64,000 nt of DNA. It comes from Dimorphilus gyrociliatus (taxonomy: Eukaryota; Animalia; Annelida). Both the position numbers and the translations under genes were made by a program. The number at the start of each line of letters is the position of its first letter. The first letter of the stretch is position 1. Location of the stretch: assembly GCA_904063045.1 (NCBI GenBank), contig CAJFCJ010000006.1, positions 1,850,946 through 1,914,945 on the forward strand, written 5' to 3'. Positions 40,933 to 64,000 of the stretch are shown one piece after another. Under the pieces are notes generated by a model. The model worked only from the letters and a program-made list of their open reading frames with translations. It had not been told where the DNA came from and made no database searches.

Positions 40933-42042
40933 CTACCATTTGACTTCGTCTGATTTGAACACGACATCGAACGGCCACTTTCTCCATTGAGTCAAAGCGA
41001 GAGGTATTCGTCCTGGTGAGTAGGGTTTTAATCCTCTGGCTTTCATCTCCTCCAAAAAGCCAGGCACGAGAGGATGTGCTTTAGAATTTCTATAGAACTC
41101 CCATTCAATAAATATGGCGAATATCTTCACTTTGTCTAAAAAGCGTTTTGAATGTGAAAATGCTTTCATTTCATATCCTTGAATATCTACTTTCATAACA
41201 GCTTCAGTAAAATTGGCTACATCACTTAGATCATCCATAAGTATTGAGTGACTCGAGTTTGGTCCAAGTCCGCGATCGTTGGTCTTTGATTGAGAGATTC
41301 TGGTGTCACCCTGATTGTTTGAACTTCGTCTAAAATAAACCGTTTCTCGAGTATCTGTTATTGGATTTACAACTAGTGTCACAAATTTTTCTAATTTTCC
41401 TAATTTAATTGATTTATGCAATCTTCTAATGGTTGGATAATAGGGTTCAACAGAAAGAACAGGACGTTGAAGCGTTTTACTAATAAACAATGTATAAACG
41501 CCCAAGTTTGTTCCCAAATCTATTAAACCGGCCTTTGGTCTTTGCATAAGAAAGGATTTCACTTGATTTAGGTATCCAGCCTCCCAAGAACCAGTCCTCG
41601 CTAAAGAACCAGATACATGTAAATCCACTTTCGTATCATACAAACAAATTGGTGTATTCTTTCCTTGTCTTAAACTAACGCATTTAAACCTGTCGTTGTT
41701 AGGCAGAGATAGATTATAAACTTGAACATTTCCTTTTGAATATGTTAAATTCCCTAAAAAGCTAAGTTTCTTGTTGAAATCTGTGGCAAGATTAGTCATC
41801 GTCGTAACAGATCTTGGTTTATTGTCAAGAGTTTGAGGTTTTATTTGTTTAGAAGCAGGTATATCAAGGAATTTAACACGATAAACAGTTCCATTTTTCA
41901 TTTGAAGATATATGTTAAATCTATTTGAGAATAAGGTATAATCCATGTTTTTAAATAAAAACATAAAAAGTAAAAGCATAATTATAGCACAGAGGATAAT
42001 CCGTGCCTTTCTATTGAAGATACTTGCTGTTGACATTGACAT
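40933..42042 (-). CDS. FkbM-family (Methyltransf_21) SAM-dependent methyltransferase with an N-terminal signal-anchor; single exon
   Basis: 369-aa ORF. Short basic tail plus TM (RKARIILCAIIMLLLFMFLF), stem region, then GSWEAG, SAM-binding motif IDLGTNLGVYTL, VLSVEP, NQGDT and VMKVDIQGYE (FkbM K-x-D-x-E/Q-G-x-E motif), ending W...DVVF. Confidence 0.88.
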   Translation of the reverse strand: MSMSTASIFNRKARIILCAIIMLLLFMFLFKNMDYTLFSNRFNIYLQMKNGTVYRVKFLDIPASKQIKPQTLDNKPRSVTTMTNLATDFNKKLSFLGNLTYSKGNVQVYNLSLPNNDRFKCVSLRQGKNTPICLYDTKVDLHVSGSLARTGSWEAGYLNQVKSFLMQRPKAGLIDLGTNLGVYTLFISKTLQRPVLSVEPYYPTIRRLHKSIKLGKLEKFVTLVVNPITDTRETVYFRRSSNNQGDTRISQSKTNDRGLGPNSSHSILMDDLSDVANFTEAVMKVDIQGYEMKAFSHSKRFLDKVKIFAIFIEWEFYRNSKAHPLVPGFLEEMKARGLKPYSPGRIPLALTQWRKWPFDVVFKSDEVKW

Positions 42043-54822: not shown

Positions 54823-57800
54823 ATGGAAGAGAGTTCTATGGAGCAACCGGAAACCATTCGTTTTAGGAGGACAAACGCTTGGAGTGATAATTCGATCAGC
54901 GCTTGCGCCCATATGTTCGGTTGGTGGTTAAAACTATATTATTTTCTTGAAGAGGTTGTAGCCAGGTTTTATAAATATCAATAATCGAAATTGTGAATGT
55001 GTTTTAGAACATTCCAACATAAAAAAAAAATTGTATAAGATAGATGAGCGCATGTGTATTATTATGATTTTTTTTTTGTTGGTCTATAATTATAATCTAC
55101 TAAACATTAGTAGCGAAAAGGTGAATGTATTCATCTAAAAACATTGATTGAACTCACTTTCATTCAGGTATTGCTGGATTATTAACTACCATTATTGCTC
55201 TAATTAGTGATAAGTGGTTATATGTTTCGGAACCTGTAAATATTAAATACAAAGATAGTATTACGAATGCAACTCTTGAACAAGAAGTCTCTGTAAAAGT
55301 ATATTCCGGTTTATGGCGTTTATGTCTAGAACCAATCCCAGGCGGTTAGTATAATATAAATATATATATATTATAGAGTATATAAAACTAGAAATATAGA
55401 TATTGATATTTATAGTTATATAATTGAATATATTGTTCCACTAATAGAAAAAGAGATATCTCATATACAAATAATTTGTATTACGTAATCTAAAATAGAG
55501 AAATTCTTAGCATAAGTAAAATATCATACCAACTTATTAATAAAATACTCAAATAAACAAGAATTAATCTTGTTTAATTGCACTTTTAACCTTTTCGTTT
55601 AACCGCTAGGAATGCTTTTATTTTTATTTGTTTTGTTTGTACTTTTGCCTTGTGAAAATAAAGCAAGTCTTATAGTTTATATGTAAATTTTGGTTTATGA
55701 ATATGTAAATAAGTCATATATATATATATATATATATGTTATATAATAGACAGCATTTGAAATATTTACTTAAATCATTGTGTCTGTATTAGTCTATCAC
55801 TAGTCCGTTTTATTTGTAAAGTTGGTTGCTCGTATTTTACTGACAGAGGTCAATTGCACTACTATTGATTATAGTGGATCATGGACGGAACGCTTGGAAA
55901 ATGCGCTTACAACTGAACTGATATTAAGTAAGTAAAAATATACTTTATAATATTCAAAACCTCTATTCATAGAGTATTGTTTAGTTGTTACAATAAATAC
56001 TTTTCTTTCCTCTGTAATTTTTCATCTTTATCATTTCGTATAAAATAAAGAAAATCTACTTATTTCATTTATGTCACTATTTGAGTACAATAATAACATA
56101 TTTAGATATAGAAAAGAAGTGAAAGTAATATAAATTAGGGAAGAAATATTATGTTTAAAATGTTAATTGTTTAATACCCAAGGCAAAATCGACAGGCGAG
56201 AATAGGTTAAGGTTAGTAGGAAGCGTAAATTCATGTGTATTGTTAGTAAATTAGAAAAAGAATTACCAGCAGCCATAGGATAAGAGGAAGAGTAGGAGGA
56301 CGGCGAATGAGGGAAGAGAGAATTAAGATATATATAGCTACTGAAATAATACAATTAATTGGAAAATAATATGTCTTTTTTGAGTTACAGATAAAAAAGT
56401 AATTATAGGGTGGAGCTTATGAACTTTATAAAGTTTTCATTCACGTGACTTCTCACCATTAATTTCATCATACAAACAATTGTTTGCCTTCATCGATCAT
56501 CTTTTGTATGCTTCGCTTAAACATATACATATTAACCTTATTTGAATAATTCGTTTATTTTTTTTAAATATATATCTTAATCATCTTAAATATAAAACTT
56601 ATATATGAGAATACACAGATTACTTCAAAGTATATTTAAATGTAAACTGGTCCAAGTTACATTTTTCCTTATTTTTTTATACATAATTGATAATCGTTTA
56701 TTATTTAATTAAAGATATTAGTAAAAAGCTTACTTATTTTGTAATTAAATATTATTATTTTTACGCACCAATTCGTTTGGAAAAATAGACCGATAAGAGA
56801 AATATTTTGAAAACAAACCCTCGGAAAAGCTTTTCAAAAAAAACTTGTAAAAACTTATCGATTTCACATTCTAGTTTATTATTTATATAACGTTTGTTTG
56901 CAAAGGAATATTGTATAAACTTTATTCAAGTTGAAAAATTTACTAATTATTCTAATATCTATGATAAAGGAATAAAGAGAGGATTGATTTATATTATCAT
57001 CATACTAATACCTGTAATCGTACATCTTCGTATATTTTTTCTTTTCTCAGTAGTTTATCCCTTAAATGTTCGTTGATTACGTATTTTGCTATTATCTCTT
57101 ATGACTCATTAACGCTTTTTTATCAAAAGTTTTTCTTTAATAAAAAGTGAATTAAGCTTTCATTTTCTTTTTCCTTTCATTCACTTAATATTTTTTAAAT
57201 CTTCTTAAAATAAATCATATCACGTGATACATGCTACAAACATTAAGATGAAATAAGTCCATATACCTTATTCGATATAATAAGGCATATATCTATTATT
57301 TTTTGATTTTCTACTTTTTTAAGCCATAATCCCTTCCTGCCGCCCCCCACCCCTCTCTCTCTCTCTCTCTCTGTTTCTTTAAAGCACTGATCAGATTTTA
57401 TGCTATCCTGTACTTCCAATCAACTATATATGTTTGCCGTACTTCACATATAATAGGCCTATCTATTATTAATCAATGCTTTGTGCTAGGCCGTTTTAAA
57501 ACAGTATACATTATATTCCATTTAGAGAAATTCTCTTTCCTATTTTTCGTTAGCTTTAGCAATAGTCATGTATTTTTATTGTATTTTATTACAATTATAT
57601 ACTAAAATATAAGTTGCTTTTTTTTTAATGTCTTTATTTTGTTTAAATAGCTATTTTCCATCTGTATATAGTTTTTTTTAATGCCAATAGGAGGAATAAG
57701 AAAATCTTCAATTGCCTTCGCTTTAAGTACAATTTTGCAGTTTGCCGCGGCAATTGTTGCCGGCATGGGAAATCTTCGAAAGAATAGTCTATGCTTAATA

Positions 57801-58148
57801 GGAGCCATCATGTTTATAATTTCTGCTTTAATTCTATCTGCAGCAGTTATATTGTATGTCTGCGCTGTAAATGATGAAGTAACTCATCGAAAAAAGCCAA
57901 TTTTTATGGGCGAATCAGTATTTTCGCACCGATACGGTAGAGGTTTTTTCCTAATTGCAGCTTCAATAATCTGTTCTCAAGCGGCTGCCGCAACGAATAT
58001 CTACTTATCGGAAAGATGGTATCAGCATGATTATAGGAGGTTTTTTAAGGCTATACCGGGTTTGCGGAGGAAATTACCCATCAAATTATCTCGAAGCCTC
58101 AGTTACCGTCTAAGGGAATCAAGACTTTCTATACTGGTTACTTCTTAA
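54823..58148 (+). CDS. TARP/stargazin (CACNG)-like four-TM protein, claudin superfamily
   Basis: Four exons (54823-54919, about 55169-55345, about 55849-55927, about 57691-58148), phase-1 introns. TM1 AHMFGIAGLLTTIIALISDKWLY, ECL1 VYSGLWRLC...C, then RGIRKSSIAFALS, GAIMFIISALILSAAVILYVCAVNDEV and FSHRYGRGFFL. These match CACNG-family patterns (TDYWLY, HSGLWR.C, I++YIS...E, Y.YG.SF). Confidence 0.85.
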
Positions 58149-58984: not shown

Positions 58985-61900
58985 ATGGAGGATAATTGGA
59001 GGCCACTACCAGTAGTACTTTTTAATTATATTTTTAACTTGTATACTAATAAATCAATTTGTTTTTAATAAATAAAAAGAATAATAAGCTATTCCTTTTC
59101 TAACAAAGGAAAAAGTATACTTTTATCATTTATTATTTCTTTTTGTGATAAAAAAAATAGGCCAAAAGGCCGTGGTCTGATGAGGATAAGGACAGTAAAG
59201 GTATAAAAGACGGTGCAACTAAATACGAATCTTGGAAGAGGTAACACTTTTCTTCCCTTTTCGCTAATGATGATTACATACTTTAAGTATTAAATGAATT
59301 TTCAGCTTATTACTCAATTATACAAGTTCAACCACTTTGCACGGAGTTCGCTATATTACGATCGATACTTTATTTAAAATTAGAAGGTCTCCAATTCTTT
59401 TCTAATTAGTTTAATTAAGCAATTAAATAATAAGACTATTCAATATTTATTTAATATAAATAATATAGTATTTTTAATTATTTTTAAGTATGACTTAATT
59501 TCTGTTAATGCATATAATATTTATTAATAATAATAAAAACACAGAATCCTTTGGGCATTGTTAGTAGCTTCGGCCTTTGGAGTATTCGTTTACTATACAT
59601 ATAGTAAAATCGATTACTTTTTACAATATCCGAAAAATATAGACGTCGAAGTAACTTATCTACCAAGGGTCAAGTTTCCTGCCGTAACGATTTGCAATCA
59701 GAATCAATTGAAGTACCATTTTTAATTGGCCTCGTTTATCAACTCTTATTCTTCATTAATTTAGATTAACGGAACTCGCCGAAAAGAAATACTACAATCT
59801 CGTTCCACTTTTATTTCCAGTTGAAAAGAATTCAGGTATAGAAAAATCTTTTTCTTAATTGAATAAATTTAAAAGAATGAGGAAGAGAGAGAAAAGGTGA
59901 GAGAGAATGACGGAGGAAACGGGTAAAGAGATATTTTTTATTAATTTAAATCAAAAGAGATATTTACGTACATAGCTTTATTAGTTGATACTATTACGTT
60001 GACTCGTCTTATCCTAATACATACGATATAAAGGTAATATACTGTTAGATCCCATACAAACTGGTATTAACACACTTTAATAACGCATTAACTATATCCT
60101 TTTAAAAACAAATTAGGAACGATAAGGCTTCCGTTTAGTCATCCGGTTTAGACTCTTCCGTCATAATTTTTTATAAATTTTTTTAATGTCAGCATCGATT
60201 AATAAATCAAAGAGAATTTTTGCAACTTCCGCTAACTTTCTTTCTTTCCGATTTCTCTGTTTTGTTATATGAATGTAGACATATTTATGACATTTTTGTT
60301 CTTTTGTTTCAAGTATTCAACCCTCTATTTATCCAACAGCTAGGAGCCAATGCCGAATAGATCAGTGGATGTGTCTTGGTCAAGATAAATGCATCGATAA
60401 AAATTCAATATGTGACGCTTTTCCTGATTGTTTGAACGCAACCGACGAGACAAACTGCAGTAAAACATAATACAACTTAAAAATCATTTTTTATATAAAA
60501 AATCAATTTTTGTCCTTTTCTATTCACTTTCGCAATAGCAATCTGCCCAGCTTTGCTCCTACAAAATCAATTCAACGTCACTACTAATTTGACGTCGTTA
60601 CTGTTTAAACGACAATCGAATACTTTTAACCAAAGCCGACTGGTCTATATGACCGATCGGAATGAAATACTTTACATATTCAAAATAAAGAATAAGTGGC
60701 TAATTTCTGATATCTACATGCAGGAAACAAATTACGTAGCAATTTTAGATCAAGATAGCGAACTACCATACGGCGAAAACTTGGTTTGGAAAACGGAAAA
60801 TGGTTCGAAAATTGGTTCCATGATGTGCTTTTGTTAGTAATAAATAGGCCTATAAAATCTAATATTTTTTCCCGCCTTCAAGAAAACTATATATATATAT
60901 ATAAGTAAATAAATAAATATACGTATATAAATATGAGTTTATGTTACAGACAATCCTGATAAGACGAAAAAACATAGTAGTATAGGGAATATTACTGGCG
61001 TGTCGCTTAATGATTTGTACGACACATCGTCCCATAAGAAAAGAGATTTTGTTGAAAAATGCATTTGGAAAGGGAAAGACTGTAATAACGAAGATATTTT
61101 TGAACAATACACGGATATGGGAGTTTGTTTTACGTTCAATTCAAAAAATGATATGTTTATTGAACAGTCTGGTCCTGGTTACGGACTAACTTTGGCGCTG
61201 AATATTGAACAATACGAATATACTAAAAATTCCGAGACTGGAGTTGGTGTTAAATTGTTAGTTCATGACGTAGACGACAGGCCTCTTGTAAAGGAGAAGG
61301 GCATATCGGTATCTCCTGGATTATATTCTTTCATCTCAGTGGAAACGACTCAAGTTTGTTATCTTTTCTCTAAGTTAATTTAGCTCTTTATCCCTACGGA
61401 TTAGGTAGAAAATTTGAAGCCACCGTGGGGAAATTGCGGAGACAAGGATTTAAAATATTTCAGCGGTTATAGTTCAGCCAAGTGTAAATTACAATGCGAA
61501 ACCGATTTCCTACAAGATAGATGCAACTGTAGAGATGTATCAATGCCAAATCGAGATGGTAAATAGCATAAATCAATAAATTATTATACGTAATAAAAAC
61601 AGTCATAAAAGTACATTGAATAAAAATTGTCGAATAAGATTAAAGGATTATCGTTAAAATATGAGTAATTTTAAATTATAGCTATATATTTTTTATATTT
61701 TGAACGAATATTATATCAACTAAAGTAAAGAGGACGTTGTTCTTTAACTTGAAAAAAAAGGAGAAAATACTTTATACATACAAACATATTATCCAAGCAG
61801 CTCATTAAACGCATTATTTTCTTACAGGTTTTCCTCAAGTATGCAAGATCGATCAATATATCAAATGTGCAAAGCCATTCTTAGGTTGGTAGATCTATAT

Positions 61901-64000
61901 ACGACTGATGATAATTTTATCTTTTCATTGTATATTTAAGTAACTTTGTCCCTTTTTATTCTTCTCTTTTTTTTTCTTTTGCTCTTATTCATAAATTATT
62001 TTATTCATAAATCTGTTAAAAGATTGATTATATTCTAAAAACAAACTCTAAACCTACCAGTATATCATAGTGTAAGAATATATAGATTGTTACTACGACT
62101 ACATGTGTATGAGGTTGGGCAATCCGTACTGACAGGTAGATGAGTGAATCTCTTTTGTAATGTTTACATAAACCCCAGAATGTCTATATTCATTCTATCA
62201 TTACTGTACCTTACGGATTCCCATAGTTATGTAAATAACTCATTAATTAATAGAAAATAGAAATGCTCTTTATGGTCCTATATTTTAGATTTTTCTTATT
62301 ACAATTATTCATTCAACGAACAGATGAGATGAGAGCGGCGGGAAATTATTGTTCCTGTGAAAAACCATGTACTTCGCCAGAACACGTTCCAACAACTTCT
62401 TTTTCCGTTCTTCTAAACAAGGCTGTCGATTTAGAAACGAATAATGAACCTAGAAGTATTAACCTTCACAAAAAACTATCAAAAGCAAGAGAGATATCAT
62501 ATAGGTCTTTCAATAAATTAAATATCTTTATTAGACCTTTCTACCTAACCCTTGTTCCCTTCTCGTAACATAGCAAGATGTATATACCCTTTTCCATGTC
62601 TGTTTACATTTGTACTTAAACAGTATTACGGACAATTGTAGCTAACTATCTATCATTTGAGAACAGATTATTCGACGATAAATACGAAAGAACCCTAAAA
62701 AAGTTCCATCGCCTGAAAAATTCGATTTCATCGACATTTAGATTCTTAACTGTGACCTATACAACCCTAGAACAAGTAAATTCTGACCTATCAACTACAC
62801 TTGAGGCTATTAAAAAAGATGGCATGTGGTTGAGAGATTTAATCATTGCTGGCGAGAATGTTTTAGAGGAGGGCGCCTTAAAGATTATCGACGATTTAGA
62901 AGATATTATCTCTTCCGCCTTAAATGAGCCATTTATAGAATTTAGAAAATTAATGAAAGAAACATTAGATCATTATAGTATTATTTACAATCGGTTCTGG
63001 GATCTTACTTGTTTCATAAACGGTACTTGTAAATCAATTGATTGGAGAGGAAATGTTACTTGTCCCACATTAGATTTTGGAAATGTCAGCTGCAATTGTC
63101 AAAATGATTACTATTGCTCCAGGAGAGAGAATGCCGCTTGGGTTAGAATTTCGTCCTTAATAGACTCGTCTAATAAATTATTTTATGAAAGAATCTTGGA
63201 ATTTAATGACAAATTCCAAAAATTACCGAATATTGATCGTCTATCCTGCATACAAATTAACTTGAACCTGTTAAAAGATACACTGGGTAGCGGTAGCGTA
63301 AACAATTGCAATAAGAATATAATGAAGAATTTAAAAGCCTATGTTAAAACTAAATTTAATTTAATTAGACCAAGGTTTAATAGTATCGAACATACTTTAA
63401 GGCATATGTTGATTCGATATGTTAAAGATATGAGAGTTTTGGATGACATCGTTCAAGATAAAAGACAATATTTTTCATTGGAAAAGTCAATTTCTAATAA
63501 TTTAAAATCAATTTTTGATCATTTAAACGATATTAGACAAGAAATATTAAGTAAAAGTTCTTTTATAAAAGCGGTCAGATATCATCTCTGGTTTACTCAA
63601 CTCAATGTCAATTTGAATCCACTTTATAAATCAATCAAAGAGCTTTTTGACAACACCCTAATAAGAATAGACAGCTGTAAGGTTGAAAAATTCAACCTAT
63701 TGAATCTAATTAGGAACGTTGAGAGGAATTACGTGAACGGAAGTACAAAATTAAAAGAGGTAAAGAATTTATTGCATTTTCAAAGACATCTTCAGCTGTT
63801 GACAATTTTTCAACAAATATTCGATTCTTTAATAATTAATACAAATCAAAGGATAAAAAACTTGGAAACCATGATTAATGAATTCTATTTTACATTTATG
63901 ACCGTTATTCCTATTGAAGATTTAAAGATTGCATCTGAATATTTTAAGCAAAAAAACCTTTTGCTACCGAAATATATTATAAAAGAATCCCCTCAGATGG
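58985..64000 (+). CDS. DEG/ENaC (ASIC-like) amiloride-sensitive channel subunit with an LDLa insert and a very large knuckle insert; truncated at the right edge
   Basis: Spliced exons give the HG motif (STTLHGVRYI), TM1 (ILWALLVASAFGVFVYY), KFPAVTICNQN, CIWKGKDC..YTDMGVCFTFNS, GPGYGLTLALNIEQYEY, GVKLLVHD, thumb cysteines (PPWGNC...YSSAKCKLQCETDFLQDRCNC...C...C...CSCEKPC). TM2 and the GAS filter are not reached in the window. The first exon (58985-59011) is tentative. Confidence 0.93.
60340..60459 (+). other. LDL-receptor class A domain exon (120 nt, phase 1-1) inside the DEG/ENaC gene
   Basis: ARSQCRIDQWMCLGQDKCIDKNSICDAFPDCLNATDETNC has six Cys with LDLa spacing and the CD...DC....DE acidic motif. 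It is flanked by cag| and |gtaaaa. The ORF track misses it. Confidence 0.9.

Follow-up and report, generated by a model that had tools for sequence, protein, structure and literature searches.

Whether a module of the LDL-receptor class A (LDLa) type lies within the extracellular part of a degenerin/epithelial sodium channel (DEG/ENaC), and what it would do there, is the question raised by a gene of the annelid Dimorphilus gyrociliatus. The gene is located toward the end of a 64,000-nt stretch of contig CAJFCJ010000006.1 (assembly GCA_904063045.1), hereafter called the window, which is AT-rich (GC 30.7%) and in which all positions below are counted. The assignment to this assembly agreed with a single-exon gene of the window (40936-42042, minus strand), an exact copy of whose product is recorded for this contig. 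A first-pass annotation of this stretch had described an LDLa exon shuffled into the finger domain of the channel. We traced 11 exons of the gene on the + strand from 58985 to 62455, with matching phases, AG/GT borders throughout and no stop codon in frame. As read from these exons, the architecture, namely an LDLa module together with a second module in the DEG/ENaC finger, is very probably real. The locus as a whole is best explained as a DEG/ENaC subunit gene with two finger modules derived from exon shuffling or duplication, an explanation that we regard as likely.

The LDLa module is encoded by exon 6 (60340..60459), which was confirmed to be a symmetric exon of 120 nt in phase 1-1, bounded by AG and GT. 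The 39 full codons of this exon, translated as RSQCRIDQWMCLGQDKCIDKNSICDAFPDCLNATDETNC, matched the whole profile (positions 1-37) of Pfam PF00057 (Ldl_recept_a) with 26.4 bits against the gathering cut-off of 24.1. The six Cys residues showed the canonical spacing C-6-C-5-C-6-C-5-C-8-C, and the four acidic positions that serve as Ca2+ ligands were all kept, as had been reported earlier (CD, DC and DE, corresponding to D after Cys4, D before Cys5, and D-E; CDAFPDCLNATDE). When a loose LDLa pattern was applied to the six frames of the 64-kb window, exon 6 was the sole match, and no match was obtained in 200 shuffles of the window. The module shared the six-Cys pattern, the CI motif, the four acidic ligands and the phase 1-1 exon with classical LDLa modules, such as those of the LDL receptor (LA5), TMPRSS, enteropeptidase and MALRD1. 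Unlike these, it is positioned inside the extracellular domain of an ion channel, has Ser in place of the Trp before Cys4, and has Asn in place of the Asp in the C-x-D-x-S-D-E stretch, the Asn being a part of an N-A-T glycosylation sequon. Exon 6 encodes an intact LDLa module, which is predicted from its ligand residues to bind Ca2+.

The LDLa module is not the only addition to the channel. The first-pass annotation overlooked exon 7 (60539..60832), a second inserted and non-canonical module of 294 nt and 98 codons that is also in phase 1-1, with AG/GT borders and an open frame. The 98 residues have one Cys near each end, and the single-sequence AlphaFold2 model was all-beta with a pLDDT (predicted local distance difference test) score of 39, which was too poor for a fold search. 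The search of exon 7 against Pfam gave nothing credible, with only a sub-threshold match to SH3b_T (E 0.019; 15.7 vs 27 bits). The feature search in the ESM atlas returned unnamed matches at chance level only, BLASTP against 157 homologues detected no match, and the profile comparison with eight MAM segments gave a probability of 0.2%. Based on the predicted model, exon 7 probably forms a Cys-bounded, beta-rich module without detectable relatives.

The exons on both sides of these modules possessed the features of DEG/ENaC (Pfam PF00858, ASC), that is, the HG motif, the first transmembrane segment (TM1) followed by the FPAVTxCN strand beta1, and the conserved extracellular core. Exon 3 (59306..59386) contains the pre-TM1 'HG' motif as TTLHGVRYI, and BLASTP showed 48-52% identity to the same region of spiralian homologues. 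Exon 4 (59545..59712) encodes TM1 and beta1 (FPAVTICNQN), corresponds to ASC positions 22-78 (E 1.7e-13), and was alignable to the solved chains of ASIC1 and ASIC5 and also to FaNaC chains. The following exon 5 (59765..59835), which has 23 codons and ends in phase 1, probably encodes the finger helix alpha1, an assignment made by position only. Downstream of the two modules, exon 8 (60950..61353) provides the return of the finger (the LNDLYDTSSH helix, C-x-W-x-G-x-x-C and GVCFTFN), LNIEQYEY, the beta-ball and the palm, with a match to ASC positions 136-259 (E 2e-22). The LDLa exon is thus flanked by the FPAVTICNQN exon and the C-x-W-x-G-x-x-C/GVCFTFN exon, as originally described. The upstream junction, which had been set at about 59836, needs correction, as the exon ends at 59835 and the donor GT occupies 59836-37.

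The insertion site was located by reference to chicken ASIC1, for which the 2QTS construct was taken to start at residue 26 (offset 25). The alignment of exon 4 to chicken ASIC1 ended at approximately residue 98, after beta1, and that of exon 8 began at its own residue 19 and extended from ASIC1 residue 155 onward (E 1.4e-15). The distance between the flanking alignments was approximately 179 residues here and 56 in ASIC1, corresponding to about 120 extra residues, and the gap between the flanking matches was approximately 173 residues here compared with 34 in the Patella homologue. The ASIC1 mapping and the Patella spacing indicated that the insert is within the finger, after the probable alpha1 exon. 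The GRIP domain of ENaC, which controls gating, likewise occupies a finger position, with alpha1 on one side and alpha2 on the other (Noreng et al. 2018, PMC6197857), and exon 8 was alignable to ENaC just past the GRIP region. By this alignment the two modules would sit at or near the ENaC GRIP site, and the earlier assignment of the insert to the part of the finger where ENaC has GRIP agrees with the mapping. The GRIP domains of human alpha, beta and gamma ENaC are comparable to the insert as disulfide-stapled, beta-rich finger insertions that are peripheral on the extracellular domain and control gating (PMC6197857). In contrast to the insert, however, GRIP is neither an LDLa module nor Ca2+-binding and acts via protease cleavage, and no sequence similarity was found between them; the insert in turn consists of two modules of the mobile type encoded by separate phase 1-1 exons. 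The degenerins MEC-4 and DEG-1 of C. elegans have extra Cys-rich and neurotoxin-like extracellular domains. These are likewise lineage-specific Cys-rich additions, but are family-specific and not recognisable mobile modules such as LDLa.

The coding nature of the inserted exons was assessed by comparison with L003, a 1,493-nt unspliced contig (SRR23372229) that was reached through a 62-aa Logan open reading frame (ORF) retrieved by a search with exon 7. This contig spans window positions 60337-61624 with 81% nucleotide identity, and the nonsynonymous and synonymous substitution rates (dN and dS) were calculated by the Nei-Gojobori method (NG86). Exons 6-9 showed zero indels and kept their AG and GT sites. 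The indel runs were 1 and 10 for intron 5, 1 and 2 for intron 6, and 33 and 16 for intron 7. Exon 6 had 26 differences in the 39 full codons, 16 of which were at third codon positions; the synonymous differences (15.5 per 19.2 sites) were saturated, and dN was 0.116. The dN/dS ratios of exons 7, 8 and 9 were 0.19, 0.06 and 0.03, respectively. In exon 6, L003 showed no change at any of the six Cys, at the Trp or the CI motif, at the four acidic ligands or in the N-A-T sequon, the replacements being confined to the C1-Trp loop, the C2-C3 loop and a KN pair, and the LDLa copy of L003 also exceeded the Pfam cut-off with 26.2 bits. In another run (X1), the region 60380-60459 showed six substitutions, all at third positions and all synonymous, and the adjoining intron had deletions of 1 nt and 2 nt. 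The saturated synonymous sites, the low dN and the indel-free exons indicated that exons 6 and 7 are translated in this frame. Judged by these comparisons, both the LDLa and exon 7 modules are translated and held by purifying selection.

The first loop of the LDLa module, from Cys1 to Trp (60354-60362), varied among the copies: the window has RID, L003 has QKS and the contig of run X1 has QEN. This variation could reflect relaxed or diversifying selection. The coral-associated 'metatranscriptome' libraries behind runs X1-X4 and L003 (SRR23372229) yielded unspliced, intron-bearing contigs from one or more Dimorphilus-like worms, with a mosaic similarity to the window ranging from 81% to 97%, which could result from DNA carry-over, several related lineages, or paralogues.

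The relatives of the gene were then surveyed with exon 8 by phmmer against 1.84 billion representatives, which gave 1317 matches. The best full-length matches were 'uncharacterized' proteins of approximately 940-1000 aa from molluscs, nemerteans and annelids, with 39-44% identity. By this similarity, the gene is probably one of the long (~940-1000 aa) DEG/ENaC proteins that form a group in spiralians. The members from Patella, Haliotis, Tubulanus, Lineus and Owenia share the exon 8 core with it but have neither a finger insert nor LDLa.

Modules upstream of the finger helix were found in three other proteins, all of them uncharacterised database entries. DgyrCDS8565 (CAD5119980.1; P0081), encoded on another contig of the same genome, has the order LDLa-MAM-LDLa-MAM followed by ASC, with the LDLa and MAM exons in phase 1-1. 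The array of this paralogue was considered to be inside the finger, because its HG and TM1/beta1 exons, although unannotated, were detected upstream of the array and of the model start (L001 4410-4699). The Intoshia linei protein OAF70867.1 (P0022) combines modules of the PAN-like, MAM, kringle and LDLa types; one more LDLa, separated by 36 residues from the finger helix that follows, scored 25.4 bits in a scan of this piece by itself. The order at the Intoshia locus was HG, TM1, beta1, array, LDLa and ASC. At this locus (L002 4040-4117, 5430-5537 and 5924-5959), the public Intoshia model omits the TM1 and beta1 exons, and by eye its start resembles a transposase fragment. In CAPTEDRAFT_191217 of Capitella (P0158), two MAM domains are accompanied by an LDLa-like piece of sub-threshold score (19.9 bits) directly before the finger helix. 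The model of this protein likewise begins without TM1, and its array, known from a model lacking the TM1 side, is probably at the same site as those of Dimorphilus and Intoshia.

The Dimorphilus and Intoshia arrays are similar to the present insert in having LDLa, along with MAM and kringle, between beta1 and the finger helix of an ASC core, and the Intoshia LDLa and the Capitella LDLa-like piece are further similar in being placed directly before this helix. The array proteins differ in having several hundred to approximately 1,000 extra residues and several MAM domains, whereas the present gene has one LDLa and one 98-residue module and no MAM. A word-indexed protein search retrieved only the query itself for the Dimorphilus paralogue, and only the Capitella protein for the Intoshia protein. 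Literature searches for degenerin/ENaC with LDLa or MAM returned only unrelated TMPRSS papers, and we are not aware of any account in which a recognisable mobile ligand-binding module is part of the gating region of a DEG/ENaC channel. The novelty claimed for the architecture therefore holds in part: no paper on degenerin/ENaC with LDLa was found, but ASC and LDLa already co-occur on the uncharacterised public proteins of Dimorphilus and Intoshia. ENaCs appear in the D. gyrociliatus genome paper solely as a canonical repertoire (PMC7854359). From this survey, the gene appears to be a minimal member of an undescribed DEG/ENaC group with finger modules, comprising Dimorphilus, Intoshia and probably Capitella.

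The most likely origin of the insert would be exon shuffling or duplication among paralogous channels that have longer LDLa/MAM arrays at the same site, and the insert could be such an array in reduced form or, alternatively, a starting form. The shuffling proposed at the outset fits the symmetric phase-1 exon and the LDLa exons of the paralogous array, which are also in phase 1-1.

Several observations weigh against this explanation of the locus. Spliced RNA was not found in the RNA-library runs holding the stretch, which were four coral metatranscriptomes; these runs contained unspliced contigs of relatives with no splice joints. The connection of exons 6-7 to the channel exons is predicted on the basis of strand, phase, position and family logic. 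The public annotation has no gene between 50792 and 60369 and leaves exons 1-5 unjoined to the rest. L003 could derive from a related species or from a paralogue. Exons 6 and 7 can be skipped without breaking the frame, and exon 7 is without a fold assignment. The channel gene extends beyond the window end at 64000, and the second transmembrane segment (TM2) and the G/S-x-S selectivity filter fall outside the window. The exon 8 tree (100 rows, 135 columns) was not resolved; it paired this gene with P0081 at an SH-aLRT (Shimodaira-Hasegawa-like approximate likelihood ratio test) value of 75, both on long branches, and long-branch attraction may explain the pairing. Finally, the residue two positions before Cys4 was not aromatic but Ser (NSICD) both in the window and in L003. 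In LDL-receptor modules, an aromatic residue (Trp) at this position and acidic residues dock a lysine of the ligand, and many LDLa modules outside the LDL receptor also lack this Trp. The classical ligand-binding signature of exon 6 is incomplete because of this Ser, with the Ca2+ cage being intact.

What the two modules do in the channel can be addressed only tentatively. The finger of DEG/ENaC channels moves against the thumb during gating, and a docking or tethering role was proposed for the insert on this ground. We infer that the module pair would probably be a Ca2+-stabilised docking or tethering piece that binds an extracellular partner or senses Ca2+ and thereby biases opening. A docking or Ca2+ role of the pair is a possibility that we put forward with reserve. 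A receptor-channel that is gated or tethered through the binding of an extracellular protein, a matrix partner or extracellular Ca2+ at the finger insert is unlikely. The fast-changing first LDLa loop might tune the specificity for a partner.

A purely structural role and regulated skipping are serious rivals to these proposals. In the former case, the insert would be a shrunken remnant of a larger LDLa/MAM array that serves as a folded spacer, with Ca2+ for folding only and no role in ligand binding or gating, which we consider conceivable but doubtful. Far longer arrays indeed occupy this site in the paralogues and in other annelid-lineage species, the module has no Trp before Cys4, and the weakly supported tree joins the gene to the array-bearing P0081. 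On the other hand, the four acidic ligands and the six Cys were invariant in L003 while the neighbouring loop residues varied. The invariant ligands indicated that the Ca2+ site is constrained, although such constraint is no guide to whether the role is structural or one of sensing.

In the latter case, exons 6 and 7 would be regulated cassettes, one or both of which are skipped in the main isoform, with the LDLa form being minor or stage-specific; this we judge rather unlikely. The lengths of both exons are multiples of 3 and both are in phase 1-1, and as they preserve the frame, a major isoform without them would be possible. In addition, the region 60496-60632, which spans the border between intron 6 (its 3' half) and exon 7 (the opening 94 nt, 31 codons), had only 1 mismatch in 137 nt when compared with L003. 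Intron 6 itself (60460..60538, 79 nt) was unusually conserved, showing 96% identity to L003 with indels of 1 nt and 2 nt. Around this block, dS in exons 8-9 was higher than 1, and introns 5 and 7 were unalignable with L003. Conservation around an exon is typical of regulated splicing. However, the purifying selection on both exons means that at least one isoform translates them, exon 6 is part of the public model from an internal ATG onward, and the conserved block showed no stable RNA structure. An RNA-editing-type duplex or a structured RNA was rejected for the block, with fold z-scores of -1.0 and -0.9, and neither long inverted repeats nor an Rfam match was detected in it. Splicing control, gene conversion and introgression are possible explanations of the block.

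It is very improbable that the public annotation (the record of CAJFCJ010000006.1 in GCA_904063045.1, to which window positions 40397-60792 are identical) is correct as it stands, with the product starting at 60369 without TM1 and exons 1-5 being nothing or a piece of a dead gene. The NCBI record does give a 974-aa product on the + strand from 60369, with ASC as the sole Pfam family on record and the upstream interval free of genes. This start corresponds to the Met of QWMCLG within the LDLa exon, and the public model therefore lacks TM1 and has an LDLa without Cys1. The resulting product would have a decapitated LDLa, no signal peptide and a single transmembrane segment. The ASC positions that are missing are supplied exactly by exons 3-5, whose strand is the same and whose phase matches, and relatives in runs X2-X4 keep exons 4-5 at approximately 97% identity. 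The models of DgyrCDS8565 and Intoshia share the truncation, with TM1 exons unannotated upstream. Moreover, the D. gyrociliatus genome paper, in which the annotation was obtained with an Augustus/PASA/EVM pipeline, reported no trans-splicing (PMC7854359), and a real internal start is unlikely for this reason. The 974-aa product of the locus was not among the exon 8 matches in the 50%-identity representative library.

The last rival, by which the exon would be no more than an LDLa-like ORF arisen by chance or a dead intronic pseudo-exon, might be suggested by its mere 40 codons and a Pfam score just ~2 bits over the cut-off, but is extremely improbable in view of the saturated synonymous sites, low replacement, absence of indels and kept splice sites in L003, the LDLa copy of which also passes Pfam, and the empty shuffles.

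The remaining exons complete the gene within the window as follows. Exon 1 (58985..59011; ATG and 9 codons, GT donor at 59012) is tentative; it is in phase with exon 2 but has no independent support and is absent from the public annotation. Exon 2 (59161..59240), with an open frame, AG/GT borders and phase 0 to 2, encodes the cytoplasmic N-terminus. Exon 9 (61405..61558) encodes a Cys-rich part of the palm/thumb and corresponds to ASC positions 273-322, and exons 10 and 11 (61828-61884 and 62324-62455) continue the channel, as assigned by frame and splice sites only. In the region 62324-64000 the gene goes on into a very long insertion after a C-x-C-x-x-P-C motif, and the frame tried from an acceptor at 62642 met a stop codon. 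A 155-codon ORF upstream of the gene (57681-58148, +) showed weak claudin/PMP22-like matches (Pfam E ~0.01, under the cut-off), and the public annotation has neither a product nor a gene on record for it.

Channels of the DEG/ENaC family open in response to protons, peptides, force or proteolysis, via the finger and thumb. TM1 is cut off in the public models of the present gene, of its paralogue in Dimorphilus and of the Intoshia protein, by which the architecture has been hidden from domain surveys. Among natural examples of the design the present gene is the smallest, its single LDLa and one further module being placed on two skippable exons, and it would therefore be a practical construct for deciding if inserts of this kind have a gating or tethering function or are mere decoration of the channel. 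If the modules did make the protein a receptor-channel, annelids would have an undescribed group of 'receptor-armed' sodium channels, of which this gene would be the simplest member and one tractable by experiment.

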